A DNA stretch of 64,000 nt from positions 310,001 through 374,000 of the IMG/VR virus record IMGVR_UViG_3300033145_003233; one strand, written 5' to 3'. Below, piece by piece: positions 1,483 to 17,870 of this stretch (positions are counted from its first letter, which is position 1; each line of letters begins with the position of its first letter). The notes under the pieces are model-generated. The model did no database searches. It was given only the letters and a program-made list of their open reading frames with translations, and had not been told where the DNA came from. Made by a program: the position numbers and the translations under genes.

Positions 1483-1944
1483 TTATCCAAATATCTGACC
1501 TATTTCAGGTATCTCATCATCCATGATTTCCAGGATTAAAGTCCCCTCTTCTTCTTCATAAGTATTTTCACCTGGATAAACCGTGAAAACTACTTGCGTC
1601 TTCATCTCTATCTTATTGTACTTCAATTCTACATCTCTAATAGTATTCTCTATAGTAGGAGCATCAGTTACAGCAGACGCAAAAGTAAGTTTCTTTTTAG
1701 TCATCTGAACTTTATTTATTATAGAATAAATATCTGCCATAAATATCTTATTCCTTCTTTTCCTCTTTTTCTTCTTTGTTCTTTTCTTTCTAACATTTTT
1801 TACAACCTTCTTCTTACGTCTTGTAACAGCCTTTTTCTTAGTTTTTCTTTTTACAACTTTCTTCTTTTTCTGTTTCTTTAATTTTACACTCTTTTTTTTC
1901 ACTTTGATAGTTCTTTTTTTTATTTTTTTCTTAGTTTTTTTCAC
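1483..1944 (-). CDS. Hypothetical protein with extremely Lys/Arg-rich N-terminal half and acidic C-terminus
   Basis: About 65 residues dominated by K/R; GTG start overlaps the upstream TGA (GTGA). Confidence 0.6.
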   Translation of the reverse strand: MKKTKKKIKKRTIKVKKKSVKLKKQKKKKVVKRKTKKKAVTRRKKKVVKNVRKKRTKKKKRKRRNKIFMADIYSIINKVQMTKKKLTFASAVTDAPTIENTIRDVELKYNKIEMKTQVVFTVYPGENTYEEEEGTLILEIMDDEIPEIGQIFG

Positions 1945-2195
1945 TCATACTCCCCCAGTCCTTCGCAGTTATCAGCCCTAGCAGACATTTTTTCAGCAAT
2001 TGCCATTTGATCCAATTTCTCTTTAGCAGGGCTTTTTTTCATACATACATAACCTATGCTCGACAATGACAGATATCGACATGTTTCATGTTGATGATAT
2101 ATTTTACAGACAGCATCCAGATGTGCCTTAGGAATTTTTCTACTCTCATCCAGTAGATAATCATTCAACTGATTTTGAAAATCTATATAATACAT
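1941..2195 (-). CDS. Small Cys-containing hypothetical protein
   Basis: 84 aa with 4 Cys (CK...CRY...C.K...DNC); coupled to neighbours by overlapping start and stop codons. Confidence 0.65.
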   Translation of the reverse strand: MYYIDFQNQLNDYLLDESRKIPKAHLDAVCKIYHQHETCRYLSLSSIGYVCMKKSPAKEKLDQMAIAEKMSARADNCEGLGEYE

Positions 2196-3019
2196 TATCT
2201 TTTAAAAATCTTTCTATATTGATTTCTATCCATTTTCTTAGGTTTCAACTTCTTTATAACATCTGATAATTTCTCTTTATCCCACAATCTATTATCGCTA
2301 CAATTATGAATGGGCACAGGGCAATTCTCATCTACCCATTTCATAGCCGCTTTGCACATTTTTAAAGTATATGGTTTATGATCTCTATTTTTGCCATAAA
2401 AATCAGTTTTCCTACCCTTACCATATTTGCAATCTGTTCCCAACAGAACTATATCTGAACATCCTAAGGCAACAGCTACCTGAACGGCCAACACCCCAGT
2501 ATTCCCCTTACCATGGAGAACTCCTATATTAGAACCAAATTTAAATTCAGTATCCAATACCCTAAAATTAATAAAAATTCTTCCCGGATCTCCCGTGGAA
2601 CTAGACATCTTTATAGCCTGTTGTCTTATTATATTTTTTTTGTCGCTATTCCAAACCTGCTTATCTTGCCACAACAAAACAGTAGGATCATAAATATAAA
2701 AAATTCTATTTGTGCCTATAGTGAAATATGGATTCAGCAACTTTAAATCTTCTCTAGCTATGCTTGGGGCATTACCTAGTATAAAAGCAACATGACCCTT
2801 TAACAGCCCATTCCACCCTGATAAGGATTTATATCTTATTCTATCCCCTGTTTCCCATTTGCCAAGAATCGATGAAGTAATTTTTAACTTATTTTTCTTC
2901 TTAGGTCTGGTTTTCGTTATTGGGATAATATCTCTTTTCCTGGTTTTTTTTGATTTCTTGCTTTTTCTACCTCTAGGAGATATTTTTAAATCAGATATTT
3001 TTTTCCTATTCGGGTGCAT
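2195..3019 (-). CDS. Maf/MptE-like (GT42/GT29-related) ulosonic-acid transferase with basic N-terminal extension
   Basis: FILGNAPSI...TIGTNRI...ALGCSDIVLLGTD motifs. Confidence 0.7.
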   Translation of the reverse strand: MHPNRKKISDLKISPRGRKSKKSKKTRKRDIIPITKTRPKKKNKLKITSSILGKWETGDRIRYKSLSGWNGLLKGHVAFILGNAPSIAREDLKLLNPYFTIGTNRIFYIYDPTVLLWQDKQVWNSDKKNIIRQQAIKMSSSTGDPGRIFINFRVLDTEFKFGSNIGVLHGKGNTGVLAVQVAVALGCSDIVLLGTDCKYGKGRKTDFYGKNRDHKPYTLKMCKAAMKWVDENCPVPIHNCSDNRLWDKEKLSDVIKKLKPKKMDRNQYRKIFKR

Positions 3020-3028
3020 CTTTTCCTA

Positions 3029-3997
3029 TCATATAATCTTTCTAAAATAATCTATTGTCATATCCATTCCTTCCTCAAGCTTAATATCCGGGAACCAATC
3101 AATTAGTTCAATAGCAAGCTCTATATCAGGATTCCTTCTTTGAGGATCATCTTCTGGCAAACTCCTATAAACTATCTTAGACTTACTATTCGTCATTAGA
3201 ATTATCTTATGAGCTAACTCCAGAATATTTATTTCATGAGGATTACCCAGATTAATAGGGCCAGTTATATCCTTCTTAGATTCCATTAGTTTTATCATTC
3301 CCCATACTGTATCATCCACATAACAAAAACTTCTAGTTTGTTTCCCCTCTCCATATATAGTGATATCCTCGTCCCTTAAAGATTGAACTATAAAATTACT
3401 CACTACTCTTCCATCATTAATAGACATATTAGATCCATATGTATTAAAAATTCTAGCCACTTTAATTTCTAAACCATATTGTCTATGATAATCAAAGAAC
3501 AAAGTCTCCGCACAACGCTTCCCCTCATCGTAACAAGATCTGATACCTATAGGATTAACATTCCCCCAATATGTTTCTATCTGAGGAGAGATAAGTGGAT
3601 CTCCATATATTTCGCTAGTAGATGCTTGTAAAACCTTAGCTCCTGTTTTTCTAGCAGATTCCAGAACATTAATAGTCCCCTGCACATTAGTCTTTATAGT
3701 TTTAACTGGATCATATTGATAATAAAAAGGAGAAGCAGGACAAGCAAGATTATATATCTCATCTGCCTCAATAATAAAAGGATCACATATATCGTGTCTT
3801 ATTATCTCAAAATTATCCAACCGGCATAAATGATCGATATTTCTTTTACTACCTGTAAAAAAATTATCCAGACAAATAACGTCATTTCCCTTTTCTAGCA
3901 AAATTTCGCAGAGGTGAGAACCTATAAACCCACCTCCCCCAGTCACTAAGCTTATTTTATTCATGGCCTTCATCGTCCTGTTTATCTCCCTCTCCAA
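3029..3997 (-). CDS. uxs: UDP-glucuronate decarboxylase (UDP-xylose synthase)
   Basis: [46 protein letters not shown]. True start probably near 3973. Confidence 0.92.
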
Positions 3998-4415
3998 ACA
4001 TACTTATTTTCCAATCCTTGAACTCTTCAGCCAAACAATCTGTTTTCCAGTCTAACCTCTCTTCTGGGCCAATCAAGCTACTAATAAAATTCTGAGATCT
4101 ATTTCTTATACCATTTAAACCATGAGTTAATTTTAAAAGATGTAAATCCTGATCATCTTTTCCCTGTCTAACTTTAGATTCATTATACCAAATATGAGCA
4201 TTTATCTGGGCCAATACTACAACCGCCCTTATTAAATCTCCAGAAATTTTAATGTCTTTTTCTTTTATAATATGATCTAAATCATTAACAATGTGTTTCA
4301 TCTCTTTACCATAAGTCTCTTTACGCTCAGTAATAAAAACTTCTTTTAATTGATGTATAGTTAATCTATCTATTAATTCCGAAAATGTAGGAAGAAATTT
4401 TCTAACCATCTCCAC
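3957..4415 (-). CDS. DUF6165/DUF4254-like helical protein, paralog 1
   Basis: [15 protein letters not shown]...LAQINAHIW...[10 protein letters not shown]; shared with 8059-8502 and 8484-8906. Confidence 0.6.
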
Positions 4416-4434
4416 CCTCCTTATAAATAATTTA

Positions 4435-5388
4435 TTATTTTTTTATTCTTTTATACCATTCTACTGTTTTTCTTATACCTTCTTCTAATGATGTTTGAGG
4501 ATTAAACCCCAACATTTTTATGGCCTTATCAATATTTATTGCTCTCCTGGGAATCATAGTGGGCTTAGATTTATCAAAAACGATATTAGCATTTTCATAT
4601 CCATCTATTTTCAGAATTACATCCAATGTTTTTTTAATAGTATGAGATTCACCAGATGCTAAATTAATAATATCAAAACCATCTACTTTCTCCATGGCCA
4701 GAATTAGTCCATCTACCATATCAGATATATAGGTTATATCTTTAGAATCAAGACCATCGCCCCAAACTCCTATAGGATCATGTCTCTCTACAACTCTTCT
4801 TATCAAAGCTGCTGTAGAATGTGATGTTTCCCATTCATAATCATCATATTCTCCGTACAAATTACCCACTCGTGCAACAATAGTAGTCATAGGATTTTTA
4901 ATTTTGGTAGAGTACATTTCGCACATAACTTCTGAAAACTTTTTCATAGATGCCACGCAAAAATATTTATGAAAAAATTCTCCATTATCATCCTCTTCCT
5001 TAAGGGGAAAATCTACCAATGGATAAACTGTAGTACTACTAACAAATAAAAACTTCTTCACTTTGGCATGATAAGCTGCTTCTAGCATTAAAGTGTTTAT
5101 CAGTACATTAGGAGTGACATGTGCTAATGGATTATATTCCATTACGGCTGCTCCAGACGTATTGGCGGCACACATAAAAACATAATCCTGATTTTTACAA
5201 ATCTTATTACAAAAATTCTTATCTGTCAAATCCCCCCATACAAAAGAAATATTTTCATTTTCGAATTGAGGACCTTTACGATGTAAAGTTGCCTTAACAT
5301 TAGCCCCTAGATCTACTAATCTTTTAATTAAATTTGTTCCTATAAAACCACTTCCACCAGTTACTAGTATCTTCTTACCTTTTAACAT
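4435..5388 (-). CDS. NAD-dependent epimerase/reductase (GDP-fucose-synthase-like extended SDR)
   Basis: TGGSGFIG, NLYGEYD, VWGDG; VASMK where YxxxK is expected. Confidence 0.85.
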   Translation of the reverse strand: MLKGKKILVTGGSGFIGTNLIKRLVDLGANVKATLHRKGPQFENENISFVWGDLTDKNFCNKICKNQDYVFMCAANTSGAAVMEYNPLAHVTPNVLINTLMLEAAYHAKVKKFLFVSSTTVYPLVDFPLKEEDDNGEFFHKYFCVASMKKFSEVMCEMYSTKIKNPMTTIVARVGNLYGEYDDYEWETSHSTAALIRRVVERHDPIGVWGDGLDSKDITYISDMVDGLILAMEKVDGFDIINLASGESHTIKKTLDVILKIDGYENANIVFDKSKPTMIPRRAINIDKAIKMLGFNPQTSLEEGIRKTVEWYKRIKK

Positions 5389-5400
5389 TTTAACTCCTTA

Positions 5401-5931
5401 TTAAGTTATTTCCCCTGTCATGTCTCTTTTAGACAAAATGGGATCAGATATAGGCCACCAAACATTAAAACGAGGATCATCATACTTTACTGTAAATTGA
5501 TTAGCCATACCCTTATAAATACAAGATTGCTTATAAAAGAACATTGCCTCTTCACTCATGACTACATATCCATTCCCATGTTTTGGAGGGATCAAGAGTT
5601 GTTTTTTATTTTCTCCGCTTAATACAAAAGGTTGATACTTTCCAAAATTAGAAGAATCTTTATCATAATTTAAAACATTAACATACATTCTGCCATATAA
5701 ACATGTTACTAATTTCCATGTCCTATCATCACCATGAAAGCCCCTCAAAACATGACGAGAAGACACGGCAATATTATCTTCTAAGAATTCTATTTCTTCA
5801 CCTACAGCTTCTTTTATAGCTTTTGTATAATCTATTTTATTATATAGCTCTTCATAGGTTCCCCTATGATCCTCAAAACTAGAACGATCAAATAAAAAAA
5901 CATTATCCATACTTGTAGTTTGTGCTATCAT
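5401..5931 (-). CDS. RmlC-like NDP-4-keto-6-deoxysugar 3,5-epimerase
   Basis: FEDHRG, VLRGFHGD, LLIPPKHGNG, WPISDPILSKRD. Confidence 0.9.
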   Translation of the reverse strand: MIAQTTSMDNVFLFDRSSFEDHRGTYEELYNKIDYTKAIKEAVGEEIEFLEDNIAVSSRHVLRGFHGDDRTWKLVTCLYGRMYVNVLNYDKDSSNFGKYQPFVLSGENKKQLLIPPKHGNGYVVMSEEAMFFYKQSCIYKGMANQFTVKYDDPRFNVWWPISDPILSKRDMTGEIT

Positions 5932-5933
5932 AT

Positions 5934-6929
5934 TTAAACAACCTCCTCTGCAAAATAATTCTTTCTACTTTTATATTCTTCAGAATTGTCAACAAACCAT
6001 TCCCAAGTTTTTCTCAAGCCTTCCTCTAATGATGTAGATGGTTCATAATGAATCAGTTTTTTAGCAAGAGATATATCCATTACTCTTTTAGGGAAACCTG
6101 AGGGTTTAGTAGTATCAAACTCATAATTAAAGTTTAAAAAACTTTTCAAGGTTTCTACTAATTCTCTAATAGTAACACCTCTCCCACTCCCTAGATTAAC
6201 AAATTTACTATCTGTTCCATAATATAAAGCTTGAATTATTCCTTCTGCGACATCTCTACTGTAAGCAAAATCTCTAATGGCAGAACCGTCGCCCCATATA
6301 ACAACAGGATCTTCCTTGTTATAAATTCTCTGCATAAGAGTAGGAATAACCATAGCGTTCTCAGGATCAAAGTTGTCTCCTGGTCCATAAATATTGGCTG
6401 GCCTAACAATAGCAAAATTCTTCAAACCATATTGAATGTCATAGGCTTCAATTTGTTTTTCTGCCATTCTCTTTGCCCATCCTGGAAACATATCCATAGG
6501 AGGACCATCGAGATTATTATCTTCTTTAAATACCTCTGCGCTTGAATATGCTCCCACAGAGCTAGTGTACACAATCTTTTTCACATTATTATAACGACAA
6601 GCCTCTAACACATTCGTATTCATCATAAGCAATGGAACAAAAAAGCTAGCCGGTTTTTCTTTTGTTACTTTTACAGACCCCTTAATCCCCGCGATATGAA
6701 AGACATAATCAACATCTTTAGTCCATTTCAAACATAAAACATAATCATTCAAATCACCTACTATATGATGAGCGCCTGGAACTCTTATGTTATGATCTAA
6801 AGACACAATAGAAACCTTAGCACCAGCATCTATCAATATCTTAACAACCTGTCGGCCTATTAAACCCGTTCCTCCGGTCACTAAACATTTCTTATCTCTA
6901 AAACTTTCTAAAATATCTTTCTCGATCAT
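5934..6929 (-). CDS. NAD-dependent epimerase/reductase (extended SDR)
   Basis: TGGTGLIG, RPANIYGPGDNF, IWGDGSAIRDF; PGWAK where YxxxK is expected. Confidence 0.85.
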   Translation of the reverse strand: MIEKDILESFRDKKCLVTGGTGLIGRQVVKILIDAGAKVSIVSLDHNIRVPGAHHIVGDLNDYVLCLKWTKDVDYVFHIAGIKGSVKVTKEKPASFFVPLLMMNTNVLEACRYNNVKKIVYTSSVGAYSSAEVFKEDNNLDGPPMDMFPGWAKRMAEKQIEAYDIQYGLKNFAIVRPANIYGPGDNFDPENAMVIPTLMQRIYNKEDPVVIWGDGSAIRDFAYSRDVAEGIIQALYYGTDSKFVNLGSGRGVTIRELVETLKSFLNFNYEFDTTKPSGFPKRVMDISLAKKLIHYEPSTSLEEGLRKTWEWFVDNSEEYKSRKNYFAEEVV

Positions 6930-6941
6930 ATTGATATCCTA

Positions 6942-8069
6942 CTATTTCTTTCTTACATTAACTAGAATCGGCTCTTTCCAATCAAAAGCTATAACCCATG
7001 CCCAATAACGAACTCTGCCCTCTATTAACTCATAGTCATAAAATCCTGTAGGGTCATCAATGGGAGAAACTTTAACTGGATTACATTTTTTATCTTCTTT
7101 TATTCTTTCAGACAACTCAACAGGACTAGGAGCAAATTTCATATCATTAGCTACAGCTTCTTCCACTGTCTTATATACTTTTCTATTACCTCTTCCTCCA
7201 TCATCAACTCTTATTTTTTCTGGATACACATATATTTTTTCTTTCTTAAAGACCCTGCCTATATCAGAAAAATCTTTTTCTGACATATCAAAATCAGAAG
7301 CTCTAGAATTATCTTCAATATGAGAGATATTAGTACTAGCAGGAATAGCCACTACTGAATCATTATGAGTTAACCAATTTAAAATAAGCTGAACAGAAGT
7401 TATGTCGTATTTGTCTATATATTTCTCAAAGATAATTTTTTCTTTATTATTGCCATAAAATTGTCCCTGATCTAAAGGGCTATAAGCTATCAGCGTGATA
7501 TCATTTTTGTCGCAATAAGAAAGAATTTCTTCCTCCACCCCTCTTTCAAAGAGATTATATTCAAGTTGCATAGAAACAATGTCATATTCAAAATTATTAC
7601 GAGCTTTTACAAACTCTTTAAAAGAAAAATTACTAACACCAACATGTTTAATTTTACCTTCCCTAATAAGCTTACCCATAGTCCACATAGTTTCTCCTAT
7701 GGGGATTTTATAATTCGGCCAGTGGATCTGATATAGATCTATACAATCTATACGTAATCTTTTTAAGCTTTCTTCTGCCGATTTTATAACATCATTAGAA
7801 GATAAATGCTCTGGTGACACTTTTGTAGCTATAACTATTTTATCCTTTTTATGTTGTGGAATACTTCCTATAAGTTCTTCAGCATGACCATTACCATAAG
7901 ATTCAGCAGTATCAAAAAAATTAATCCCACAATCTATGGCTTTTTCTATAGCTCTTTTACATTTTTCATCATTAGAAGTATCTGGCTCTAGATAACCGCC
8001 TATCCCCATTGACCCGAAACCAATAGAGGATATATTTATATCAGTATTGCCTAATTTTTTATATTTCAT
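6942..8069 (-). CDS. Aldo/keto reductase with C-terminal ParB/Srx-like domain
   Basis: GINFFDTAESYG, IDLYQIHWP, GVSNF, IAYSPL; tail YELIEGRVRYWAW. Confidence 0.85.
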   Translation of the reverse strand: MKYKKLGNTDINISSIGFGSMGIGGYLEPDTSNDEKCKRAIEKAIDCGINFFDTAESYGNGHAEELIGSIPQHKKDKIVIATKVSPEHLSSNDVIKSAEESLKRLRIDCIDLYQIHWPNYKIPIGETMWTMGKLIREGKIKHVGVSNFSFKEFVKARNNFEYDIVSMQLEYNLFERGVEEEILSYCDKNDITLIAYSPLDQGQFYGNNKEKIIFEKYIDKYDITSVQLILNWLTHNDSVVAIPASTNISHIEDNSRASDFDMSEKDFSDIGRVFKKEKIYVYPEKIRVDDGGRGNRKVYKTVEEAVANDMKFAPSPVELSERIKEDKKCNPVKVSPIDDPTGFYDYELIEGRVRYWAWVIAFDWKEPILVNVRKK

Positions 8070-8502
8070 TTTTTCTCACATTATTAATAATATCTAAATA
8101 CCATGCATCAGGAGATATAAATGTGGCCTTTGCCCCAGGAGTAGTAAGCTCCCCAACGCTACCCGAAATCATATTCTTGATAGAATTTTTTATACCATTA
8201 TTAAATTCCTGAGATAATATAAGCTTATCCGTATAGATATCATGATTATCTTCTAATTCCATTTCGTCCTTCAGGGACCATATATGCAGATTAGCTTGTG
8301 ACATCAAAATTATCTGTCTTATTAGCTTGGGTGTTAATTTTATATCTTTCTCATCTAACACGTAATCTATATCATGCGCTAACTTTTTTATTTCTCCCGA
8401 CCAATCAGCAGATAATAACATTTCTTTTATCTGACAAATAGATAACTTATCTATTAACTCAGCAAAAGTAAAATTAACTTTTTTTACAAGCTTATCGTCC
8501 AT
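8059..8502 (-). CDS. DUF6165/DUF4254-like helical protein, paralog 2
   Basis: FAELIDKLSICQIKE...MSQANLHIW. Confidence 0.6.
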   Translation of the reverse strand: MDDKLVKKVNFTFAELIDKLSICQIKEMLLSADWSGEIKKLAHDIDYVLDEKDIKLTPKLIRQIILMSQANLHIWSLKDEMELEDNHDIYTDKLILSQEFNNGIKNSIKNMISGSVGELTTPGAKATFISPDAWYLDIINNVRKNEI

Positions 8503-8906
8503 CCTTCTAACCCATCCACATTAATATTTGTTTTAATATCAACTGTATTCGACTCATCTACTTCCTGCATAATAATATTTTTAATTCTATTTCTAATACC
8601 ATTTAACTGATGAGACAATATGAGATGCTTCCCATAATCTTCACCAGAGCTTTTTTTCATTTTCTCTTTCTCTTTCCATATATAAAGATTAATTTGAGAC
8701 AAAATAATAATTAACCTAATAAATGTTGATGATGGTTTAATATCTCTCTTTTCTAAATCTACATTTATATCATGCATTAGATAACCAATCTCTTTTTCAA
8801 AATCATCTATCTCTGCAATATTATCAACCTCTTTAATTTGCTGTATAGACAAATTATCAATCAAATCTGAAAAAGACAAATGACATTCTCTTCTACCCAC
8901 TAACAC
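8484..8906 (-). CDS. DUF6165/DUF4254-like helical protein, paralog 3
   Basis: FSDLIDNLSIQQIKE...LSQINLYIW...LSHQLNGIRN. Confidence 0.6.
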   Translation of the reverse strand: MLVGRRECHLSFSDLIDNLSIQQIKEVDNIAEIDDFEKEIGYLMHDINVDLEKRDIKPSSTFIRLIIILSQINLYIWKEKEKMKKSSGEDYGKHLILSHQLNGIRNRIKNIIMQEVDESNTVDIKTNINVDGLEGWTISL

Positions 8907-9912
8907 ACTTCCCCACTTTTCTACTAGCTATGAATTTATTATTTTTATACCATTCCATAGTCTTTTTGATGCCTTCTTCCAAATTAACTCTAGGAACAAA
9001 AGAAAGCAAGGCCTTAGCTCTATTCGTATCAAGTATTCTTATCCTGTCACCAGAAGGCTTACTACTATCCCATTTCACTTCTATCTCTTCCGGCATCAAA
9101 TCGACAAGAGTTTCAACTAATTCTTTGATAGAAATTCCTCGTCCACTTCCTAAATTTATAGGAGTACAGGGAGGAGCATCTTTACATGCCATTAAAATTC
9201 CATCTACAACATCATCTACAAATATAAAATCTCTTTCAGCAGTCCCATCTCCTGCTATTTTCATGGGGTTCTCCCCATTTACCGCTCTACTAATTAAGGC
9301 CGGAATAACCTGTGCTGTTTCGGGATCGAAATCATCATAAGGACCATATACATTTGACAATCTTACAATCCTACCTGCGTCCCATCCATATTGAAGCATA
9401 TATGCTTCCGCTTGAGCTTCTCCGACTCTCTTAGCAATCCCGGCAAATCTATCATTAGCATGGGGAGGACCATCCCAAACTGAATCTTCGTGCCGTACTG
9501 AGAGATTGGGGTATTCACAAATACTACCAACAAACAAAAACCTTTTGACATTAGCTAATCTAGAAGCTTCCATCAAATTAGTATCAGCCATCAACAATGG
9601 AACGAAAGTACTAGCAACTTTCGATTCCCCTATTTGTGTACTCCCCTTTACACAGACTAAATTAAAAACATAATCGTAATCATGAACTAGGTCCTTACAA
9701 GCTTGGAAATCAGTTAAATCTACATATAAATTATAAACATCATATCCCTTAAAAACAGCCATAACCCTTTCCACTGAATCAATAGAAGCGACTGTTACAT
9801 ATGCCCCCATATCCATAAGCCGCTTAACTAATGGAGTTCCTATAGTTCCACTTCCTCCAGCCACTAATATATTTTTATCTTTATAAAATGAAATAAGATG
9901 TTCTGGAAACAT
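8893..9912 (-). CDS. NAD-dependent epimerase/reductase (extended SDR)
   Basis: AGGSGTIG, NVYGPYDDF, GDGTAERDF; AGIAK where YxxxK is expected. Confidence 0.85.
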   Translation of the reverse strand: MFPEHLISFYKDKNILVAGGSGTIGTPLVKRLMDMGAYVTVASIDSVERVMAVFKGYDVYNLYVDLTDFQACKDLVHDYDYVFNLVCVKGSTQIGESKVASTFVPLLMADTNLMEASRLANVKRFLFVGSICEYPNLSVRHEDSVWDGPPHANDRFAGIAKRVGEAQAEAYMLQYGWDAGRIVRLSNVYGPYDDFDPETAQVIPALISRAVNGENPMKIAGDGTAERDFIFVDDVVDGILMACKDAPPCTPINLGSGRGISIKELVETLVDLMPEEIEVKWDSSKPSGDRIRILDTNRAKALLSFVPRVNLEEGIKKTMEWYKNNKFIASRKVGKCVSG

Positions 9913-10636
9913 ATCTATATCTTTCTAATTTAATATTATTCAAACCCATCACCTCTCTTAATGCTACCGTCTCTCCTGGAGAATCCCGATCATTTAACTC
10001 GTCAAATCCCAACACGCTCCCCTTAACCAAATAAGGCTTTATAATTTCGAGACATTTTTTAGTAGGCTCATATAAATCAAAATCAAAATAAGCTAAAGAT
10101 ACAATAGTTTCTGGATGCGCCTTTAAATATTCAGCTAATTTCTTAGGGCCATCTCCCTTTAATATCTCAAATTTCTTTATATGAGAAATAGGATTGTCTT
10201 TTTCTTGTAAAGTTAAAATGTGTTCTAAATATTTTTCATAGTTGTTAGTTACATTATCTGCCCCATCAACCATCAAAGCAGATTTTCCATCTTTTTTATT
10301 AATATTTATAAAACCTTCAAAAGTATCAAAAGCTAATATCTTTCTATGTCTATTAAATGGCTCATATATACCTCTCAATGCAGCTAAAATAGATGCGTTT
10401 TGTCCCCACCGAGTACCAAATTCTATAATAATTCCATGCTTATCAATTATCTTGTTATATAAAAAATCAAAAAACAAAATACGAGAAAGATTTTTAGAAT
10501 TTAGAAATAACCCCAGATTAGATAAAATTTCATCATCAGGAAGAGGGTTCTCCTTAAAAGCAGTAAGCATTTCATTCCTAGCTTCTTCCTCTTTATCGCT
10601 ACTAAAATCTATATTTCCCAATTTTGTTTTACTCAT
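9881..10636 (-). CDS. TylF/MycF-family sugar O-methyltransferase
   Basis: IIEFGTRWG, FDTFEGF, AYFDFDLYEPT, GFDE. Confidence 0.85.
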   Translation of the reverse strand: MSKTKLGNIDFSSDKEEEARNEMLTAFKENPLPDDEILSNLGLFLNSKNLSRILFFDFLYNKIIDKHGIIIEFGTRWGQNASILAALRGIYEPFNRHRKILAFDTFEGFININKKDGKSALMVDGADNVTNNYEKYLEHILTLQEKDNPISHIKKFEILKGDGPKKLAEYLKAHPETIVSLAYFDFDLYEPTKKCLEIIKPYLVKGSVLGFDELNDRDSPGETVALREVMGLNNIKLERYRYVSRTSYFIL

Positions 10637-10637
10637 T

Positions 10638-11597
10638 TTATAATTTTTCCCAAACAGTTATAGAATAACCATCTCCCAATAGGCTTCCACATGGGACTCT
10701 CACCATTTTAATTATTTTAATTATTTTCTCTTTTTCCATCCTCATTAATTTTGTAAAGAAACCTTTCAAATAATTTCTATTATTTTCTAACTTACAAATA
10801 ATATAATCAGTCAAATTAGTGTCAGTATCATAAAACTCTAACATCGAATTGACATGTACATGTCTACTAAAAGGCTTGTCTAGTAAAAATTGTAAAAAAT
10901 CACCATATCTATTGCCTAGTTGTTCCAATGCTCCCAAAGTAAAGCTAACCCCGCCATCTTGAACTAAAAAATCATTATCAGGATAAAACATATCAAAAAT
11001 GCCACCATGAATATCATAATGAAATTTATCTCTGATAAGATTAATGATTGCTTGCGGTTGGCGGACCCAATCAACACCATAATAACTTTTTTCTGGAGCC
11101 ATCTCACAAAAAGATAACAAATTAGCACATGAGCCACAACCGAACTCGTAGATATTATCCTTGTCTTTTAAAAATGAATCAAAAACAAATGCTCTTATTA
11201 AATCTACAAAATTTTTCTCAAAATTATCATCCACTGATCTCACATAATCTCCAAACAAACGAATAGGAGAACCGCTCCTGAAATACTGAGGAGCCAAAGC
11301 AGCTTTGTCATACCCACTCTCAATAAAATTATCTTGTATTTCCCCCCAACCCTTCTCCCATTTTTCTTTTTTACCTTCACCAGATTTAGTAAAAATCTCT
11401 GCATCTATTCTTTTTATGAGTTCAAGTATTATTTTATCTCTTTCCCTCCTATCAATATGCCTATACCTAAAATCCCTATTATTAATTATATTAACACAGG
11501 ATAATGGCATCTCATTTTGATCAATATCAAAAATCATAGAGAAATCTTTAACGGTAAGATTGTGAATGTTTTCTCCCACTTTATTATTTTTCCACAA
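10638..11597 (-). CDS. Class I SAM-dependent methyltransferase
   Basis: IYEFGCGS, YYGVDW, GALEQLG. Confidence 0.75.
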   Translation of the reverse strand: MWKNNKVGENIHNLTVKDFSMIFDIDQNEMPLSCVNIINNRDFRYRHIDRRERDKIILELIKRIDAEIFTKSGEGKKEKWEKGWGEIQDNFIESGYDKAALAPQYFRSGSPIRLFGDYVRSVDDNFEKNFVDLIRAFVFDSFLKDKDNIYEFGCGSCANLLSFCEMAPEKSYYGVDWVRQPQAIINLIRDKFHYDIHGGIFDMFYPDNDFLVQDGGVSFTLGALEQLGNRYGDFLQFLLDKPFSRHVHVNSMLEFYDTDTNLTDYIICKLENNRNYLKGFFTKLMRMEKEKIIKIIKMVRVPCGSLLGDGYSITVWEKL

Positions 11598-12543
11598 AAG
11601 ATAAAATAGATTTAATTATACTATCTTTATCGAGTCCATATTCAGAACGAATCCAATTTCTGTCCCCGTATTTTTTACAAAATTCATCTGGCAAAGATAT
11701 TTTCTTTAATGGCTTATATATATTATTCTCAACCATAAGCTCACTTATTATACTTCCCAATCCACCGATACAAGAATGCTCCTCCACCACAACTACTCTT
11801 TTAGAACCTGATATTATTCTAGCTGCTTCTTTATCATTAAATGGTTTAATCCTAAATACATCTCTATAAGTAGTGAATACTCCTTCTTTATGAGTTAAAT
11901 ATTCTGCTGCTTCTATTACATCATACATGTTAGTCCCAGTAGAAAAAATTACAACATCTGGTTTCCCATAAGGACCACATATTCCAAGACTAAACGGAAC
12001 TGAGTCCTTATTTGGTTCTGGAAAAATAAAGTTATCATATTCTGGCAAGGGAGAATAATCACCCTTATCTAATCTAATATATGTTGGACCATCATTCTCA
12101 TATGCCTTCTGAGCAACATAAGAATTCATAACTGGACCTGAAGGACTATATATAGTTAAATTAGGAAGAGTTCTCATGATCGCGATATCATTAAGAGAAT
12201 GATGAGTAGGCCCATCATTACTAAACGTAAGACCAGCCCCGATACCAATAATTGTAACAGGTAAATTCATGCAACATAAGTCAATTTTTATCTGCTCAAA
12301 ACACCTTTCTGTTACAAATGGAGTGATAGTATAAACACAAACTTTTTTGCCAGCTTTGGCTAACCCAGCCGCTACACTTATCATATTCTGTTCAGCTACG
12401 CCAACATTGATAAATCTACGCCCCAGTTTTTCTTTAAACTTAGATAAACTAAATGCCCACATATCAGCAGTAAGAAAATAAAAATTATCATCATCTTTAA
12501 CTAAATCATATAATCTGTCAAAAAATGCGTCTCTAAGGTCCAT
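11584..12543 (-). CDS. Transketolase, C-terminal subunit
   Basis: INVGVAEQNM, EQIKID, GPTHH, GPTYIRL, VEEH...GGLGS. Confidence 0.9.
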   Translation of the reverse strand: MDLRDAFFDRLYDLVKDDDNFYFLTADMWAFSLSKFKEKLGRRFINVGVAEQNMISVAAGLAKAGKKVCVYTITPFVTERCFEQIKIDLCCMNLPVTIIGIGAGLTFSNDGPTHHSLNDIAIMRTLPNLTIYSPSGPVMNSYVAQKAYENDGPTYIRLDKGDYSPLPEYDNFIFPEPNKDSVPFSLGICGPYGKPDVVIFSTGTNMYDVIEAAEYLTHKEGVFTTYRDVFRIKPFNDKEAARIISGSKRVVVVEEHSCIGGLGSIISELMVENNIYKPLKKISLPDEFCKKYGDRNWIRSEYGLDKDSIIKSILSFVEK

Positions 12544-13312
12544 TTATTTCCCTCCTAGCAATTTCTAATTGTTCATCATTAGGAACTCCGTGATGCCATT
12601 TGGGAACATTCTCCATATAAGATATCCCCTTTCCCTTAACAGTATTAGCTATAATAACCAATGGTTGATATGGATTAACTTTCTTACCCTTCTTAATATA
12701 TTCAATTATCTGTTTTACATCATGGCCATTAATATTACAAACTGCCCATCCACACTGACGAAGCCGACCTCCCAAATATTGTAATGAACAAGAATCCTTC
12801 ATAAAATCAGTGGCGCAAATATTATTCTTATCTATAATTAAAATTATATTATTTAAACTGTGTTGAGCAGCAAATAAAATAGATTCCCAAACAGATCCCT
12901 CATTACATTCTCCATCCCCCATCAGAACATATATGTCCCCTTTTTCTTCATCATTTATTCTAGCCAATGCCATACCACAAGCGACACCAAGACCATGACC
13001 TAAGGACCCAGTATCAAATTCAACTCCCTTAATATTTATATCTGGATGGCCTCCCAATGGATTCCCATTTAAATAACATTCTTCATAATCCTTATCATTT
13101 ATATATCCCAAATCATGCAAAATAGGATAGAACGCCATAGAAACATGTCCTTTACTTAAAATAAATTTATCATCTTCCTCAAGAATTCCACCATAATAAA
13201 GGGCCACCAATATTTCCACACATGAAAGAGCACCTCCGACATGTCCTTTCTTAGATCTATATAATATATCTAAGATCTCATTTCTTAACCATTTACATTT
13301 ATCTTCCAGCAT
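12533..13312 (-). CDS. Transketolase, N-terminal (TPP-binding) subunit
   Basis: GHVGGALS, LSKGH, TGSLGHG, GDGECNEG...N TPP motif. Confidence 0.92.
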   Translation of the reverse strand: MLEDKCKWLRNEILDILYRSKKGHVGGALSCVEILVALYYGGILEEDDKFILSKGHVSMAFYPILHDLGYINDKDYEECYLNGNPLGGHPDINIKGVEFDTGSLGHGLGVACGMALARINDEEKGDIYVLMGDGECNEGSVWESILFAAQHSLNNIILIIDKNNICATDFMKDSCSLQYLGGRLRQCGWAVCNINGHDVKQIIEYIKKGKKVNPYQPLVIIANTVKGKGISYMENVPKWHHGVPNDEQLEIARREINGP

Positions 13313-14358
13313 TAAAATGGACCTTTAAATTTATTTTCATAATTATAAAATTCTTCACCTTCCACATTAATAGAAGATAAACCGAACATCTTTTCAACTG
13401 TTCTAATAATATCAACAGAATCAGGATAAAACTCATTTTCTAGATGTCTAGCCGTAGGACAAGGAGTGTGAGCGAAACCCATTCTTTCTATAGGGCAATC
13501 TAATAACCGGAAACAACTACTATATATTGTCGCTGCCAGTTCCGCACCAAAACCGCAGTGAACCCAGTCATAATCTGCTATTATACATTTACGAGTTTTG
13601 CTAACAGACTCAACCATTGGTTTCAAATCTACAGACGATATACACCTAGCATCTATTATCTCAACAGATATCCCGTACTTCTCTAAAACTTGAGCGGCTC
13701 TCAATGCCTCGACATTCATCCACGAGGTAGCTATAATAGTAACATCCTCTCCGTCCCTTATCTTGCTGGCCTTATCTAGGGGAACTCTAAAACTCTTTTC
13801 TTCTACTTCTCCCTCCTGGAAATATAACCACCTATGTTCCATAATCATAACCGGATTATCATCACGAATAGCTGCTATCATCATTCCCTTTACATCTCTT
13901 ACAGTTGTGGGCATCACAACTTTTAAACCTGGGATATGAGCGAAAATAGATTGCATAGTTTTAGTATGTTGACATCCCTGCCCCCAACCCCTACCTATAA
14001 TATTCCTTATTACGATAGGAATTTTCAATTTACCATCAGACATATATCTAAAACTTGATATTTGATTAATTAATTGATTCATAGCTAGAAGAGAAAAGTC
14101 AACTCTCATATGAACAAGGATAGGTCTCAACCCATTAATTGCTGCTCCAAGAGCAAACCCTGTTAGACTATCTTCAGATAAAGGAGTATCAAAACACCTA
14201 TCTTTTCCAAAAGTTTCTTGCAATCTTTCAGTTGTGCCAAAAATCTTCTTACAATCAGGAACGCCTATGCCATAAATAAAGACATTCTTATCCCTTTCCA
14301 TTTCTTGATAAATAGCCTCGTTAATTGCTTCTTTATATGTTATTTTTTTATCTCTCAT
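13312..14358 (-). CDS. 2-oxoacid/acetoin dehydrogenase E1 beta-like subunit
   Basis: FDTPLSE, GLRP, HIPGLKVVMP, EHRWLY. Confidence 0.9.
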   Translation of the reverse strand: MRDKKITYKEAINEAIYQEMERDKNVFIYGIGVPDCKKIFGTTERLQETFGKDRCFDTPLSEDSLTGFALGAAINGLRPILVHMRVDFSLLAMNQLINQISSFRYMSDGKLKIPIVIRNIIGRGWGQGCQHTKTMQSIFAHIPGLKVVMPTTVRDVKGMMIAAIRDDNPVMIMEHRWLYFQEGEVEEKSFRVPLDKASKIRDGEDVTIIATSWMNVEALRAAQVLEKYGISVEIIDARCISSVDLKPMVESVSKTRKCIIADYDWVHCGFGAELAATIYSSCFRLLDCPIERMGFAHTPCPTARHLENEFYPDSVDIIRTVEKMFGLSSINVEGEEFYNYENKFKGPF

Positions 14359-14360
14359 AA

Positions 14361-16187
14361 TTACTCAAATAAAACATTATTATAAAGTTCACTAACATCT
14401 GAAGATTCTGATACCTTAGCAAATTCCAAACTTCTATATATTTGCTCATCTATTTCTTTATTTACTTTTTCTATGTCCAAATCCGGATGATCTTTAAGCA
14501 ACAAATCTCTTGAATATTCTAAAGGATCTTCTACCTTATTCAACTCATCTCTACTACGATACCCAGCTTCCCAATCATCGCATACTCCAACATGTTCCAG
14601 ACATCTAAGATAATTAAATGACATGAAATGAGGTCGATTAGTTGCCCTTATATCTTCTACTATTTTTTTTGTATCATGATAAATATGATCAACTTTTGTA
14701 GTTTTGTAATTATGCACAGTTAACCTGAAATTATCCATAAAGTCACATATATCATCATAACCATGTCTTTCTTTTTTTGAAGTACACACAGCTAAATCAT
14801 TATCTTCATACACAAATAGAACTGGAAGTTGCCATAAAGATGCCATATTTATACTTTCCCAAAAATTCCCCTCATCAACAGCCCCGTCCCCAAAGAACAC
14901 AACCACTACTCTACCATTTTTTTTCATTTTATTAGCAAACGCTGCCCCAGTCGCTACAGAAATATTGCTAGCAACGATAGCAGATGATGACATATACCCC
15001 TCTTCAGGACAAGCTATATGCATAGAACCAGCTTTGCCTCTAGCCTCTCCAGTTTTTTTCCCATACATTTCTGCAAAAAAGCCATGAGTATCTCTTGTTT
15101 TAGCCAGATATGGAGCATGAGTGCGATATGTAGTAAAAATTTGATCGTCATCATTCAAAGCTCCTATAATTCCAACTGATATAGCTTCTTCTCCTCTCGA
15201 CATATGCATAGGAGTTTTCATTTCATCATCAAAATAATTATCTATTATTACACTCTCTGCTTTTCTAATTAAATAAATCTTTTTATACAACTCCAAACTC
15301 AAGTCCCACTTTTCACTTGTCCTGCCCTGAGAAATAGTAGTCAACTTCTTATCATTAACATATGTTGCAACTGGATCAGATCTCTTAGACCTTGCCACTA
15401 CAATGCATCTCTCCACCTGTCTTTTTGTTGCCCTAATAATTCTGTCAATTCCATATTTTTCTGAAGAATTTAATCTCCATTCACACCACAAAGAAGAAAA
15501 TAAAGCTGCATCTCGAGCTGCTAGAGATGGACTAATAGAACCATAACCTTCATTATTCTCTACTGTTCTAACTTCTTTTACATAAATAGATTGCCCGCCA
15601 GCTTCATAAAGACGCATAGCAAAATCTTCAGCATAATAACTACAAATAAAATTCTTATCAATTCCACCTAACTTGAAATATGCTTCCTTATGGAACATTA
15701 AACCAGCCCCATTAGGGAGAAAAGGACAATAATAACCCCTGCTTAAATGTTTACCACTACGCTTACCAAAAAAGAACCTACTAGGACTAGCTCTTTTACA
15801 TATCACAAATTTATCTATCTTAGGCTTATAAATATAACGACCCAATGCACCTGCTGAAAAATTATATTCATTATTACCTAATTCTATCAAATGATCATAT
15901 AAGCAATCTAATGCATTCTTATTGGGATAACTCAAATCATCACCACTATTAAAAATAAAATCTCCTCTGGCCTCCAACATTCCTATATGAAAACACTGAG
16001 CTGGTTTTACTTCGGCATAAATATATCTAAAATTTTCAGGTAGTTCAAAATCCGGTCTTATATGTCCAATAAAAATAACTTCAAATGGTATATAATTCTC
16101 TTGTAAGCCATCATAATACTCTTTCCAAAAATCTATTTTAATAGCTGGAGAAACAACACTTACTATTGGTTTTATATAAGAACACAT
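14361..16187 (-). CDS. In-frame fusion of a GT2-like glycosyltransferase (N-terminal ~295 aa) and an E1 alpha TPP subunit (C-terminal)
   Basis: N-terminal part aligns with 41560-42417; C-terminal part has PMHMSRGEEA, GSMH and FGDGAVDEG...DN. Confidence 0.8.
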   Translation of the reverse strand: MCSYIKPIVSVVSPAIKIDFWKEYYDGLQENYIPFEVIFIGHIRPDFELPENFRYIYAEVKPAQCFHIGMLEARGDFIFNSGDDLSYPNKNALDCLYDHLIELGNNEYNFSAGALGRYIYKPKIDKFVICKRASPSRFFFGKRSGKHLSRGYYCPFLPNGAGLMFHKEAYFKLGGIDKNFICSYYAEDFAMRLYEAGGQSIYVKEVRTVENNEGYGSISPSLAARDAALFSSLWCEWRLNSSEKYGIDRIIRATKRQVERCIVVARSKRSDPVATYVNDKKLTTISQGRTSEKWDLSLELYKKIYLIRKAESVIIDNYFDDEMKTPMHMSRGEEAISVGIIGALNDDDQIFTTYRTHAPYLAKTRDTHGFFAEMYGKKTGEARGKAGSMHIACPEEGYMSSSAIVASNISVATGAAFANKMKKNGRVVVVFFGDGAVDEGNFWESINMASLWQLPVLFVYEDNDLAVCTSKKERHGYDDICDFMDNFRLTVHNYKTTKVDHIYHDTKKIVEDIRATNRPHFMSFNYLRCLEHVGVCDDWEAGYRSRDELNKVEDPLEYSRDLLLKDHPDLDIEKVNKEIDEQIYRSLEFAKVSESSDVSELYNNVLFE

Positions 16188-16192
16188 AAAAA

Positions 16193-16909
16193 TTACCCTT
16201 TACCATTTTTTAAACAAGATAAAACTTCATTTATTTCCAAATTGGCTCTATAGGCTGAAACCTTATCTATTTTATAAAGTTTTTTAACCAACTGAATCTT
16301 ATCATTATCAACAATAGAAGTATTAATATATACCACTTCACGCCATTTAGGACTTTTTTTATTAATAATCCTTGCTGGCACAAAAGAACAAGCTGACAAA
16401 AAATCATGCACAACATTTAAAAGAGGGATACCCTCATAACATCTTTTAAGCCACATTTCTAAATGAATAACAATAATCTGGTTCATATAATTCTTTACAT
16501 TCTTCAAGATATCATATTCAGAACCTTGAGCATCTATCTTTAAAACATCAATACCGTGACCACTTTGTTCTATAATCTTAGCAAGGCTCTTACATTTGAC
16601 AGGCTTAGAATCAACGACTTCCATACAATCAAATTCTATACGATCATCTTTATAATATTTCATATCGGGAACAAAAAGAGAACTATTTTGCCCATCTTTA
16701 GTTATATAAAGAATCTTCTCTTTCCCATCTGAAATAGCACAATCATAATAGAAATATTTATCATCTATTACCTTATTGCTTTCAAATCTAGGATCCAAAC
16801 CGATATACTTTTCTATGTATTTGCGATATCTTTTTTTATCAAAAGGAAAAACAAATCCACCAAAAGCACCTACATCAAAATATATTAACTTACTTATTTC
16901 TTGCGTAAT
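16193..16909 (-). CDS. FkbM-family methyltransferase (ORF track starts at 16798; frame extends to a likely non-canonical start)
   Basis: LKIDAQGSEY; the in-frame upstream extension encodes motif I YFDVGAFGG. Confidence 0.75.
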   Translation of the reverse strand: MTQEISKLIYFDVGAFGGFVFPFDKKRYRKYIEKYIGLDPRFESNKVIDDKYFYYDCAISDGKEKILYITKDGQNSSLFVPDMKYYKDDRIEFDCMEVVDSKPVKCKSLAKIIEQSGHGIDVLKIDAQGSEYDILKNVKNYMNQIIVIHLEMWLKRCYEGIPLLNVVHDFLSACSFVPARIINKKSPKWREVVYINTSIVDNDKIQLVKKLYKIDKVSAYRANLEINEVLSCLKNGKG

Positions 16910-17870
16910 ATTCTCTCCAGAAATTTAAAGTATCTTTTAATGTAATATCAAAATCAATGGTAGGCTCCCATCCAGTTTCTTTTTTAAATTTATCAACACA
17001 TGGAATTTGCAATGTCACATCAGATGGCCTTAGTAAAGACTTATCAACTATAACCTTCATATTTTTCGTAGTTGACATCCCTATTAATTTATCCAACATC
17101 TCTCTAATAGTCATTGTGAAATTACCACCTATGTTATATACTTCTCCATATTTACACTCATTAACCATCATCCAGTATGCCCTCACTGTGTCCCTAACAT
17201 CAGCAAATGTCCTAACGCTATCCAAATTACCCACTTTAATAATAGGCTCTTGCAATCCAGCTTCTATCTTTGCTATCTGTTTAGCAAAAGCCGCAACTAC
17301 AAAAACATCTCCTCTTTTAGGCCCAGTATGTGTAAACATTCTTGACCTAATAGTTTTTATTCCGTAAGAAATCCAATATTGTAACCCAAGCATATCCTCC
17401 CCAACCTTAGAAACGGCGTAAGGAGAAGCAGGCTTAAGAGGACAATCTTCTTCTATAGGAATATCTTTTTCATCAACCTGTCCGTACACTTCTGAGGACG
17501 AACAAATATGAACAATAGGATCATAGTCTTCCTCTTCTTTTATAATCTTAATCGCCTCTAATAAATTACATGTCCCTATCACATTTGAATCCAATGTGGC
17601 GGCAGGAACATCAAAACTATATGGTACGTAAGACTGAGCAGCCAAATGAAAAATATATTTTGGCATAACCTTCTTAATTATACGATATAAAGAAGAAAAA
17701 TCTGTTAAATCTCCATGATGAAAAGTTACAGAATCCAGCAAATGCAAAATATTTTCTTTTGGAGATCTCCATCTAGTTAACCCATGAACCTCTACATCTG
17801 TTTCTGCTAACAAATAATCTGCTAAATGACTTCCTACAAAACCAGTTACTCCAGTAATAAATGCTTTCAT
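16890..17870 (-). CDS. gmd: GDP-mannose 4,6-dehydratase family
   Basis: TGVTGFVGSHL, HLAAQSYV..SF, SSSEVYG, SPYAVSK, GNLDSVR, LRPSDV. Confidence 0.88.
   Translation of the reverse strand: MKAFITGVTGFVGSHLADYLLAETDVEVHGLTRWRSPKENILHLLDSVTFHHGDLTDFSSLYRIIKKVMPKYIFHLAAQSYVPYSFDVPAATLDSNVIGTCNLLEAIKIIKEEEDYDPIVHICSSSEVYGQVDEKDIPIEEDCPLKPASPYAVSKVGEDMLGLQYWISYGIKTIRSRMFTHTGPKRGDVFVVAAFAKQIAKIEAGLQEPIIKVGNLDSVRTFADVRDTVRAYWMMVNECKYGEVYNIGGNFTMTIREMLDKLIGMSTTKNMKVIVDKSLLRPSDVTLQIPCVDKFKKETGWEPTIDFDITLKDTLNFWREYYARNK

Follow-up and report, generated by a model that had tools for sequence, protein, structure and literature searches.

Positions 3029-17870 of the window analysed here, a stretch of 64,000 nucleotides that covers positions 310001-374000 of the 547,943-bp virus record IMGVR_UViG_3300033145_003233 from IMG/VR, carry a putative gene cluster for the tailoring of a nucleoside diphosphate (NDP)-sugar, in which three short-chain dehydrogenases/reductases (SDRs) resembling GDP-L-fucose synthase lack the catalytic tyrosine of the YxxxK motif. 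These three proteins, referred to as SDR1, SDR2 and SDR3, are accompanied by three small helical-bundle proteins, smallA, smallB and smallC, and all genes of the region lie on the minus strand. The interpretation that we prefer, with a probability of about 50%, is drawn from sequence comparison. The phage would here carry its own copy of an NDP-sugar tailoring cassette that is conserved and has spread horizontally, and the gene set of which includes a Gmd-like 4,6-dehydratase, an RmlC-like epimerase, two thiamine diphosphate (ThDP) enzymes, three methyltransferases, an aldo/keto reductase and the three SDRs. The active-site helix of SDR1-3 would be rewired, with the residue seven positions upstream of the motif lysine (K-7; Tyr in SDR1, Asp in SDR2 and SDR3) serving as a relocated acid/base, and the three enzymes may have as their target an enone, or a carbonyl in another position, on a branched or extended keto-sugar. 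The bundle would dock enzymes or hold a ligand, as an accessory module of sugar-tailoring enzymes and not as a catalytic stand-in for the tyrosine. SDR3, smallC/smallB, a putative methyltransferase named MTx and a transketolase may form one physically associated unit for consecutive steps.

SDR1 (317 residues; 4435-5388), SDR2 (331 residues; 5934-6929) and SDR3 (339 residues; 8893-9912) all match the Pfam family Epimerase (PF01370) with E-values of 1e-41 to 1e-46 and retain an intact GxxGxxG motif, which places them among the extended SDRs. The best NCBIfam match of all three is GDP-L-fucose synthase (NF047922), but their scores of 142.4, 165.5 and 142.8 bits stay below the curated cut-off of 500 bits of this equivalog, to which none of them therefore belongs. 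The active-site motifs read Y-F-C-V-A-S-M-K in SDR1, D-M-F-P-G-W-A-K-R in SDR2 and N-D-R-F-A-G-I-A-K-R in SDR3. When the three proteins are aligned by MAFFT with the UXS-like SDR of the window (UDP-glucuronate decarboxylase type; 3029-3997), which provides a Tyr-bearing reference, the lysine columns of all four coincide and the tyrosine column holds Val (VASMK), Pro (PGWAK) and Ala (AGIAK), respectively. An alignment of SDR3 by HMMER to the solved GDP-fucose synthase 8du0 likewise puts the alanine opposite the tyrosine of Y-a-i-A-K. The tyrosine is kept in the UXS-like protein (YDEGK), in the Gmd-like dehydratase (YAVSK) and in a sixth SDR encoded at 62135-63154 (YGWEK). The loss of the tyrosine from the three GDP-fucose-synthase-like SDRs and its retention by the other SDRs of the window, both reported in the initial annotation, are thus confirmed. 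The serine and lysine of the triad are retained in all three proteins, so that the Ser107-Tyr136-Lys140 signature of GDP-L-fucose synthase is broken at the tyrosine only. A plus-strand open reading frame (ORF) of 136 codons at 8930-9340 lies wholly within SDR3 on the opposite strand and is most likely a spurious antisense frame.

Homologues drawn from fetched loci and from a large protein collection show how stable the altered motifs are. Of 111 SDR1 homologues, 109 have Val at K-4 (the position of the canonical tyrosine, counted in residues upstream of the YxxxK lysine) and 110 have Tyr at K-7; their typical motif reads Y-F-x-V-G-W-M-K-R-F. Among 18 SDR2-type proteins, identified by their motif in the fetched loci, K-4 is Pro, Ala or Ser and never Tyr; Asp occupies K-7, and Trp K-2, in 17 proteins each. 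The 117 SDR3 homologues vary at K-4 (Pro in 43, Met in 41, Thr in 16, Ala in 11, Val in three and Tyr in one), and every one of them has Asn at K-8, Asp at K-7, Arg or Lys at K-6 and Gly at K-3. For two of the three families, about 1,500 to 3,000 homologue clusters appear at E-values up to 1e-40. Judged from these alignments, SDR1-3 are old, separate orthologous groups, each large and conserved, and the loss of the canonical tyrosine is a conserved feature of the three families and not a product of chance or gene decay.

Because the serine and lysine are kept and the K-7 residue is invariant, the chemistry of these SDRs looks relocated, not missing. There are precedents for such an arrangement. 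Divergent SDRs use a YxxMxxxK motif, in which the tyrosine and lysine remain near each other in space (PMC2792337); CapE is an active sugar-nucleotide SDR with MxxxK in place of the canonical tyrosine motif (PMC3699295), and Ser-Met-Lys (SMK) triads are known in sugar-nucleotide SDRs (PMC2279256). On the strength of the conserved motifs, the divergent-SDR spacing and these active Tyr-less SDRs, we infer that SDR1-3 still work as NAD(P)-binding enzymes and that their acid/base has been relocated. The acid/base pair of the epimerase reaction of GDP-L-fucose synthase, Cys109/His179 (PMC2279256), is not conserved in SDR3 orthologues, which have Cys, Gly or Asn at the former site and Tyr, Phe or His at the latter; the Cys109 and His179 positions in SDR1 and SDR2 are T/V and Y/G. 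The possibility that a tyrosine at the His179 site (GPYDDF) makes up for the lost one was considered and rejected, the site being Tyr, Phe or His among orthologues.

The closest known SDR types each differ from the window proteins in some respect. GDP-L-fucose synthase (GMER/Fcl/WcaG; PDB 8du0, 1bsv), their best match, shares with them the extended-SDR fold, the GxxGxxG motif, the equivalents of Ser107 and Lys140 and a gene setting beside a Gmd-like dehydratase. However, the window SDRs have Val, Pro or Ala for Tyr136 together with the invariant Tyr or Asp at K-7, and the equivalents of Cys109/His179 are not conserved in SDR3. SDRs of the CapE/WbpM type, with their MxxxK or SMK motif, likewise belong to the extended SDRs, act in NDP-sugar pathways and work in the absence of the canonical tyrosine (PMC3699295, PMC2279256), and the methionine found at K-4 in 41 of the 117 SDR3 homologues recalls them. 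In contrast to the window SDRs, they belong to a Polysacc_synt_2-type clade, carry out 4,6-dehydration with 5-epimerisation and have no helical partner. Matches of the window SDRs to PF02719 are weak or partial, which sets them outside this type; methionine is not conserved at the variable K-4 of SDR3, and the window proteins themselves have Val, Pro or Ala there. The divergent SDR enoyl reductases (FabI/InhA; YxxMxxxK) resemble SDR1 alone in their motif, the spacing Y-x2-V-x3-K being present in 110 of 111 SDR1 homologues, whereas SDR2 and SDR3 carry Asp at K-7 instead of Tyr. Moreover, the divergent enzymes are one-domain proteins of about 250 residues with the cofactor motif GxxxxxSxA that act in fatty-acid synthesis, whereas SDR1 is a 317-residue extended SDR with GxxGxxG within a sugar-nucleotide pathway.

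Of the small proteins, smallC and smallB have a genetic link to an SDR, namely SDR3. The smallC gene (140 residues; 8484-8906) overlaps the stop of SDR3 by 14 nucleotides, and smallB (147 residues; 8059-8502), its tandem paralogue, follows. A smallC-type gene lies directly downstream of an SDR3-type gene in seven of nine distinct loci, which come from several phyla; the remaining two lose this adjacency at a contig end or by the insertion of a CalS11-like gene. In four of four loci smallB comes after smallC. Furthermore, among the best 120 clusters of SDR3 homologues, 12 have both parts in one chain of 468-487 residues, SDR3 with a bundle at its C-terminal end, and this bundle shares 41% identity with smallC (E 6e-36). 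A maximum-likelihood tree built from the SDR parts requires six changes of the fused state; well-supported branches force at least three of these fusion or fission events, and one SDR3-bundle fusion falls in the other major clade of the tree.

Fusions extend from the bundle to further members of the cassette. A profile search yields at least five bundle-bundle tandem proteins of 287-307 residues, in which the second bundle is of the smallB type, and ten bundle-bundle-MTx proteins of 610-618 residues with a C-terminal domain homologous to MTx, whose second bundle is again of the smallB type. In two related loci the C-terminal half of the transketolase, TktC, is fused to MTx (L190:4531-6474 and L192:2606-4543; 36% identity, E 6e-67). 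SDR3, the bundles, MTx and the transketolase form a chain in that fusions join them pairwise. Thus, smallC/smallB are genetically coupled to SDR3 and MTx, and by this pattern of adjacency and fusion SDR3 and smallC/smallB are very probably functional partners; the recurrence of natural fusions speaks for an interaction of SDR3 with the bundle. A pairing of the small proteins with the aldo/keto reductase by fusion was rejected, since the proteins of about 610 residues are methyltransferase fusions. Structure prediction adds little on this point: the predicted complex of SDR3, smallC and smallB has a score of 0.00, which is evidence in neither direction, and an AlphaFold2 (AF2) model of the natural fusion P0216, built on a 12-row alignment, is too low in confidence to read, with a predicted local distance difference test score (pLDDT) of 57 and a predicted template-modelling score (pTM) of 0.54.

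The coupling does not extend to the other two SDRs. The smallA gene (152 residues; 3957-4415) follows SDR1 in the window, as smallC and then smallB follow SDR3, which agrees with the gene order described initially. However, its subfamily, with at least 549 relatives at 55-65% identity in IMG/VR contigs, keeps other company: an SDR lies directly upstream of a smallA-type gene in eight of 156 occurrences, and 90 of the 156 smallA-type loci have no gene resembling SDR1, SDR2 or SDR3. Even in the closest phage relatives (L018 and L021) another gene stands between SDR1 and smallA. The neighbours of smallA in the ESM Atlas are Uroviricota clusters; a locus search with the single smallA sequence as query gave no viral relatives. 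The fusion searches took in homologues of SDR1 and SDR3, and none of the 120 SDR1 homologues is fused, because all are 315-344 residues long. In addition, SDR1 and SDR2 occur without a bundle of their own in L011-L017, L190 and L192. These comparisons indicate that smallA is a distinct, virus-typical subfamily of the bundle domain and that its adjacency to SDR1 here is accidental. In the phage contigs L018 and L021, relatives of two window ORFs recur downstream of smallA, namely the ORF at 1483-1944, in which about 65 initial residues, nearly all Lys or Arg in a K-rich low-complexity segment, precede a short acidic domain, and its neighbour at 2195-3019, the N-terminus of which is likewise basic and rich in Lys and Arg.

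The three small proteins are mutually 32-36% identical and share the motif by which they were first recognized as paralogues of about 145 residues; profile-profile comparison between the bundle subfamilies gives a probability of 99.9%, and a profile search finds 484 representatives of the domain. The AF2 model of smallC is a four-helix bundle with a pLDDT of 90. Among 75 diverse members, W77 and N102 (smallC numbering) are invariant and L15, D17, L19, K25, D46, N73, R105 and N110 are conserved in at least 90%, whereas no Tyr or His is conserved. D17, K25, D46, N73, W77, N102, R105 and N110 make up a conserved polar cluster distributed on all four helices, and smallB and the fused versions of the bundle retain the conserved residues. 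Several bundle homologues in the databases are called as fusions to HNH/NUMOD3 endonucleases (P0041, P0063, P0094).

Pfam itself does not bear out the label DUF6165-like, attached to these proteins in the initial annotation. DUF6165 (PF19662; Pfam threshold 27 bits) gives no match to the three window proteins at E-values up to 10; the sole match in a six-frame search of the phage is an unrelated one of 13.7 bits elsewhere in the genome, and one of 43 smallA relatives matches at E 0.32. DUF4254 (PF14063; Pfam threshold 27 bits) also gives no match to the three window proteins, again at E-values up to 10. Its matches appear instead among their relatives, below threshold, in 15 of 75 and 33 of 43 proteins, with a best E-value of 1.8e-4, and a DUF4254 cluster of the AlphaFold DB aligns at a template-modelling (TM) score of 0.65. 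By these profile matches, DUF4254 is the nearest Pfam family of the bundle, below threshold, and the relationship is distant because the matches are sub-threshold only and the TM score is 0.65. The two families are alike to the window bundles in being helical proteins of similar size. ESM Atlas neighbours of the bundle carry DUF6165 and DUF4254, one DUF6165 cluster aligning at TM 0.60/0.80; the link to DUF6165 is a lead only. A search for DUF4254 in five metagenome-assembled genomes (MAGs) with the cassette found none. In the literature, DUF6165 was without mention and DUF4254 appeared in unrelated contexts only, with no function described for either family.

No counterpart of the bundle was found among solved structures or cultured phages. 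A Foldseek search of the PDB with the smallC model returns nothing at E <1, and VIA-align against a wide PDB set returns generic helical hairpins alone, with Z of at most 8.9 over about 65 residues. The bundle proteins have no match in PHROGs or NCBIfam, nor by tblastn against cultured phage records. Fold-level matches in the AlphaFold DB show the bundle fused to a 614-aa methyltransferase, to an FkbM methyltransferase, to a GT9 glycosyltransferase and to TPR proteins, and those in BFVD show it fused in giant viruses to a glycosyltransferase and to a GNAT acetyltransferase. A module for docking or ligand holding is favoured because the bundle is attached to many unrelated sugar-modifying enzymes and is duplicated in tandem.

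The gene set of the window recurs, with its order largely kept, across six prokaryotic phyla, in MAGs of Dehalococcoidia, Omnitrophota, Rhodospirillaceae, Elusimicrobiota, Bacteroidia and Pelagibacteraceae, as well as in metagenome contigs. The common cassette consists of a Gmd-like dehydratase, E1 alpha/beta, TktN/TktC, SDR3, one or two bundles, MTx, one or two aldo/keto reductases, SDR2, an RmlC-like epimerase, SDR1 and a CalS11-like methyltransferase, and some related cassettes also hold a B12/radical-SAM enzyme. An aldo/keto reductase consistently lies near the SDR3-bundle pair. Related cassettes combine SDRs and bundles in a ratio of 3:1 or 3:2, so that the 3:3 ratio from which a partnership of the two families was initially deduced turns out to be a coincidence. 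The proposal that the small proteins are partners of the SDRs survives for SDR3 and smallC, by the seven of nine loci and the fusions; it does not for SDR1, none of whose 120 homologues is fused, or for smallA, which has an SDR upstream in eight of 156 occurrences. Likewise, co-occurrence holds for SDR3 with smallC and not for each SDR type with a bundle, since SDR1 and SDR2 lack one of their own. The further proposal that the bundles supply the missing chemistry has become less likely, as the SDRs hold their own invariant K-7 residue and the bundle is fused to many other enzyme classes. A literature search found no description of such a cassette and nothing specific on Tyr-less fucose synthases or ThDP branched sugars.

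In the window, transcription of the downstream part of the cassette runs from MTx through the CalS11-like methyltransferase, SDR3, smallC, smallB, the aldo/keto reductase, SDR2, the RmlC-like epimerase, SDR1 and smallA to the UXS-like SDR. The Gmd-like NDP-hexose 4,6-dehydratase (16890-17870; PF16363 at 3e-80), which matches the gmd model TIGR01472 at 2.5e-56 but under the cut-off of that model, likely catalyses the entry step of the pathway. It is followed by an FkbM-family methyltransferase (16193-16798; PF05050) and by two ThDP pairs, one resembling pyruvate dehydrogenase E1 (E1 alpha, 14361-16187, TIGR03182 at 7.7e-72 over residues 298-606; E1 beta, 13312-14358) and the other a split transketolase-like enzyme (N-terminal half TktN, 12533-13312, PF00456; C-terminal half TktC, 11584-12543, PF02779/PF02780), the latter enzyme being a conserved neighbour of SDR3. 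E1 alpha has an N-terminal extension of about 300 residues that matches no family and that its prokaryotic counterparts (315-339 residues) do not have. MTx (319 residues; 10638-11597), a putative class-I methyltransferase with the motif YEFGCGSC, has itself no Pfam, NCBIfam or PDB match, its best E-value in a PDB sequence search being about 0.1; the MTx-homologous domain of the fusion P0013 gives weak matches to methyltransferase families of Pfam (E about 1e-3). The next gene (9881-10636) encodes an NDP-sugar O-methyltransferase homologous to CalS11, a TDP-rhamnose 3'-O-methyltransferase (PDB 4gf5/3tos, E 7e-56). The aldo/keto reductase (375 residues; 6942-8069) matches PF00248 at 7e-67 over residues 16-270, and the RmlC-like cupin, an NDP-4-keto-sugar 3,5-epimerase (5401-5931), matches PF00908 at 1.3e-36. 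The C-terminal extension of the aldo/keto reductase, about 100 residues, is without a Pfam match; cassette aldo/keto reductases elsewhere are comparably long (359-393 residues), and in L190 and L192 the first of two gives weak 4Fe-4S (Fer4) matches.

The gene content allows a cautious guess at the product. ThDP-dependent two-carbon branching of NDP-keto-sugars is known from YerE, in yersiniose synthesis, and from the E1-like AviB1/AviB2, in avilamycin synthesis. The E1 and transketolase-like pairs of the window, which stand beside a 4,6-dehydratase and reductases, resemble these systems in gene content; in contrast to the window, the YerE and AviB systems are not known to have a bundle or Tyr-less SDRs. 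By analogy, ThDP pairs beside a 4,6-dehydratase and reductases suggest a C-branched or chain-extended deoxysugar. The GDP-heptose pathways of Campylobacter jejuni have reductases resembling GDP-fucose synthase that keep the tyrosine. The enzymes of this system (PMC7949155) are otherwise comparable to those of the cassette in that they include a Gmd-like dehydratase, cupin C3/C5 epimerases and GDP-fucose-synthase-like C4 reductases, whereas ThDP enzymes, a bundle and MTx are not among them. Some prokaryotic cassettes add a GHMP kinase and an NTP-transferase/SIS protein, which suggests a GDP-heptose-type start.

How the bundle and the Tyr-less SDRs work together can be explained in several ways. 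In one of them, the bundle is an obligate subunit that places catalytic or metal-binding residues in the Tyr-less active site, which would make a true two-component NDP-sugar oxidoreductase. The adjacency of SDR3 and smallC and their fusion in at least 12 clusters through at least three events would be expected from such an enzyme, the variable K-4 of SDR3 implies that no chemistry takes place there, and the bundle offers invariant Asp, Lys, Arg and Asn on all four helices. However, all three SDR families hold an invariant Tyr or Asp of their own at K-7, related cassettes hold no bundle dedicated to SDR1 or SDR2, none of the 120 SDR1 homologues is fused and smallA-type proteins mostly have no SDR nearby. 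The bundle has no conserved Tyr or His, and it is found just as well in fusions with methyltransferases, glycosyltransferases and acetyltransferases, enzymes that can do without such help. A two-component oxidoreductase is therefore quite improbable. We also regard it as unlikely that the bundle is an enzyme in its own right, for instance an isomerase, epimerase, dehydratase or hydrolase, that catalyses a separate step on a keto-sugar nucleotide and whose fusions merely join consecutive steps. The eight conserved polar residues across four helices, the great diversity of fusion partners and the smallA-type genes that occur singly, beside varying neighbours, in many viral sugar loci would agree with it; yet the bundle has no likeness in fold or sequence to known enzymes, and the duplication into smallC and smallB, both of which keep the site, together with partners from many unrelated enzyme classes, would rather be expected of a module for binding or docking.

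The Tyr-less SDRs might instead be dead pseudo-enzymes that bind NDP-sugars or act as scaffolds, leaving the redox steps to the aldo/keto reductase and other enzymes. The canonical tyrosine is indeed absent, GMER Cys109/His179 are not conserved in SDR3, and the cassette always comes with one or two aldo/keto reductases. This explanation is hardly credible, because the three families are strongly conserved across phyla with GxxGxxG, Ser and Lys intact and K-7/K-8 invariant, and because active Tyr-less sugar-nucleotide SDRs are known. Several points also weigh against the preferred reading, namely K-7-rewired SDRs with an accessory bundle in a spread NDP-sugar cassette. The phage lacks the GHMP kinase and NTP-transferase/SIS genes of the prokaryotic cassettes, and MTx is missing from the fetched flanks of some loci with SDR3 and a bundle (L001, L015, L017). 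Operon neighbours can fuse without contact between their proteins. Because no solved structure resembles the bundle, its accessory, non-catalytic role is one that we infer, and the eight conserved polar residues would fit an enzyme equally well.

A more ambitious proposal goes beyond the accessory module and is a doubtful one. SDR3 and the bundle would be a composite enzyme in a channelled assembly of transketolase, methyltransferase, bundle and SDR, with a new SDR chemistry and a new C-branched or chain-extended methylated sugar as its outcome. The bundle would bind the NDP-keto-sugar or help to transform it, and the K-7-rewired SDRs would carry out enone or side-chain carbonyl reduction, which is undescribed for extended SDRs. 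The product sugar would be used by uncultured bacteria, archaea and giant phages.

The record that carries the cassette is of the tailed-phage type. PHROGs matches include a portal (phrog_16240 at 2e-43), a large terminase (phrog_2 at 3.5e-24) and tail fibres, and CheckV rates the record as 100% complete; the Pfam models for the NCLDV capsid, Terminase_6N, Terminase_6C and the sheath have no match in the genome. Almost all phage genes lie on one strand. The record also encodes a ribonucleotide reductase, a CCA-adding enzyme and 29 tRNA genes, the latter at 65-183 kb. Window positions 17900-64000 are a continuous minus-strand glycosylation island; the cassette lies inside this island, which in all spans at least 60 kb. 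It holds at least five GT1/GT4-type glycosyltransferases, a GT4+GT2 fusion (59355-61244), a NeuB-like nonulosonate synthase (48000-49457), two 2-hydroxyacid dehydrogenases, a HAD hydrolase and several methyltransferases. Two MptE-like/DUF115 proteins are encoded at 2195-3019 and 22380-23060, also on the minus strand. Traces of mobile elements in the island are a gene resembling MerR-HTH/GIY-YIG/NUMOD3 homing endonucleases and an ORF with an intein splicing domain (32851-33660 and 63176-63910, respectively).

If the Tyr or Asp at K-7 is the working acid/base, SDR1-3 would stand for three large families of sugar-nucleotide SDRs, as yet unstudied, in which the catalytic centre has moved and members of which are at present annotated as GDP-L-fucose synthase or epimerase/dehydratase. 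The bundle is an abundant uncharacterised domain, and its fusions to SDRs, methyltransferases, glycosyltransferases and acetyltransferases provide a first testable lead to its function. Taken together, the genes of the cassette suggest a complex sugar, so far undescribed, that would be made in many uncultured phyla and the genes for which this phage carries within its glycosylation island.

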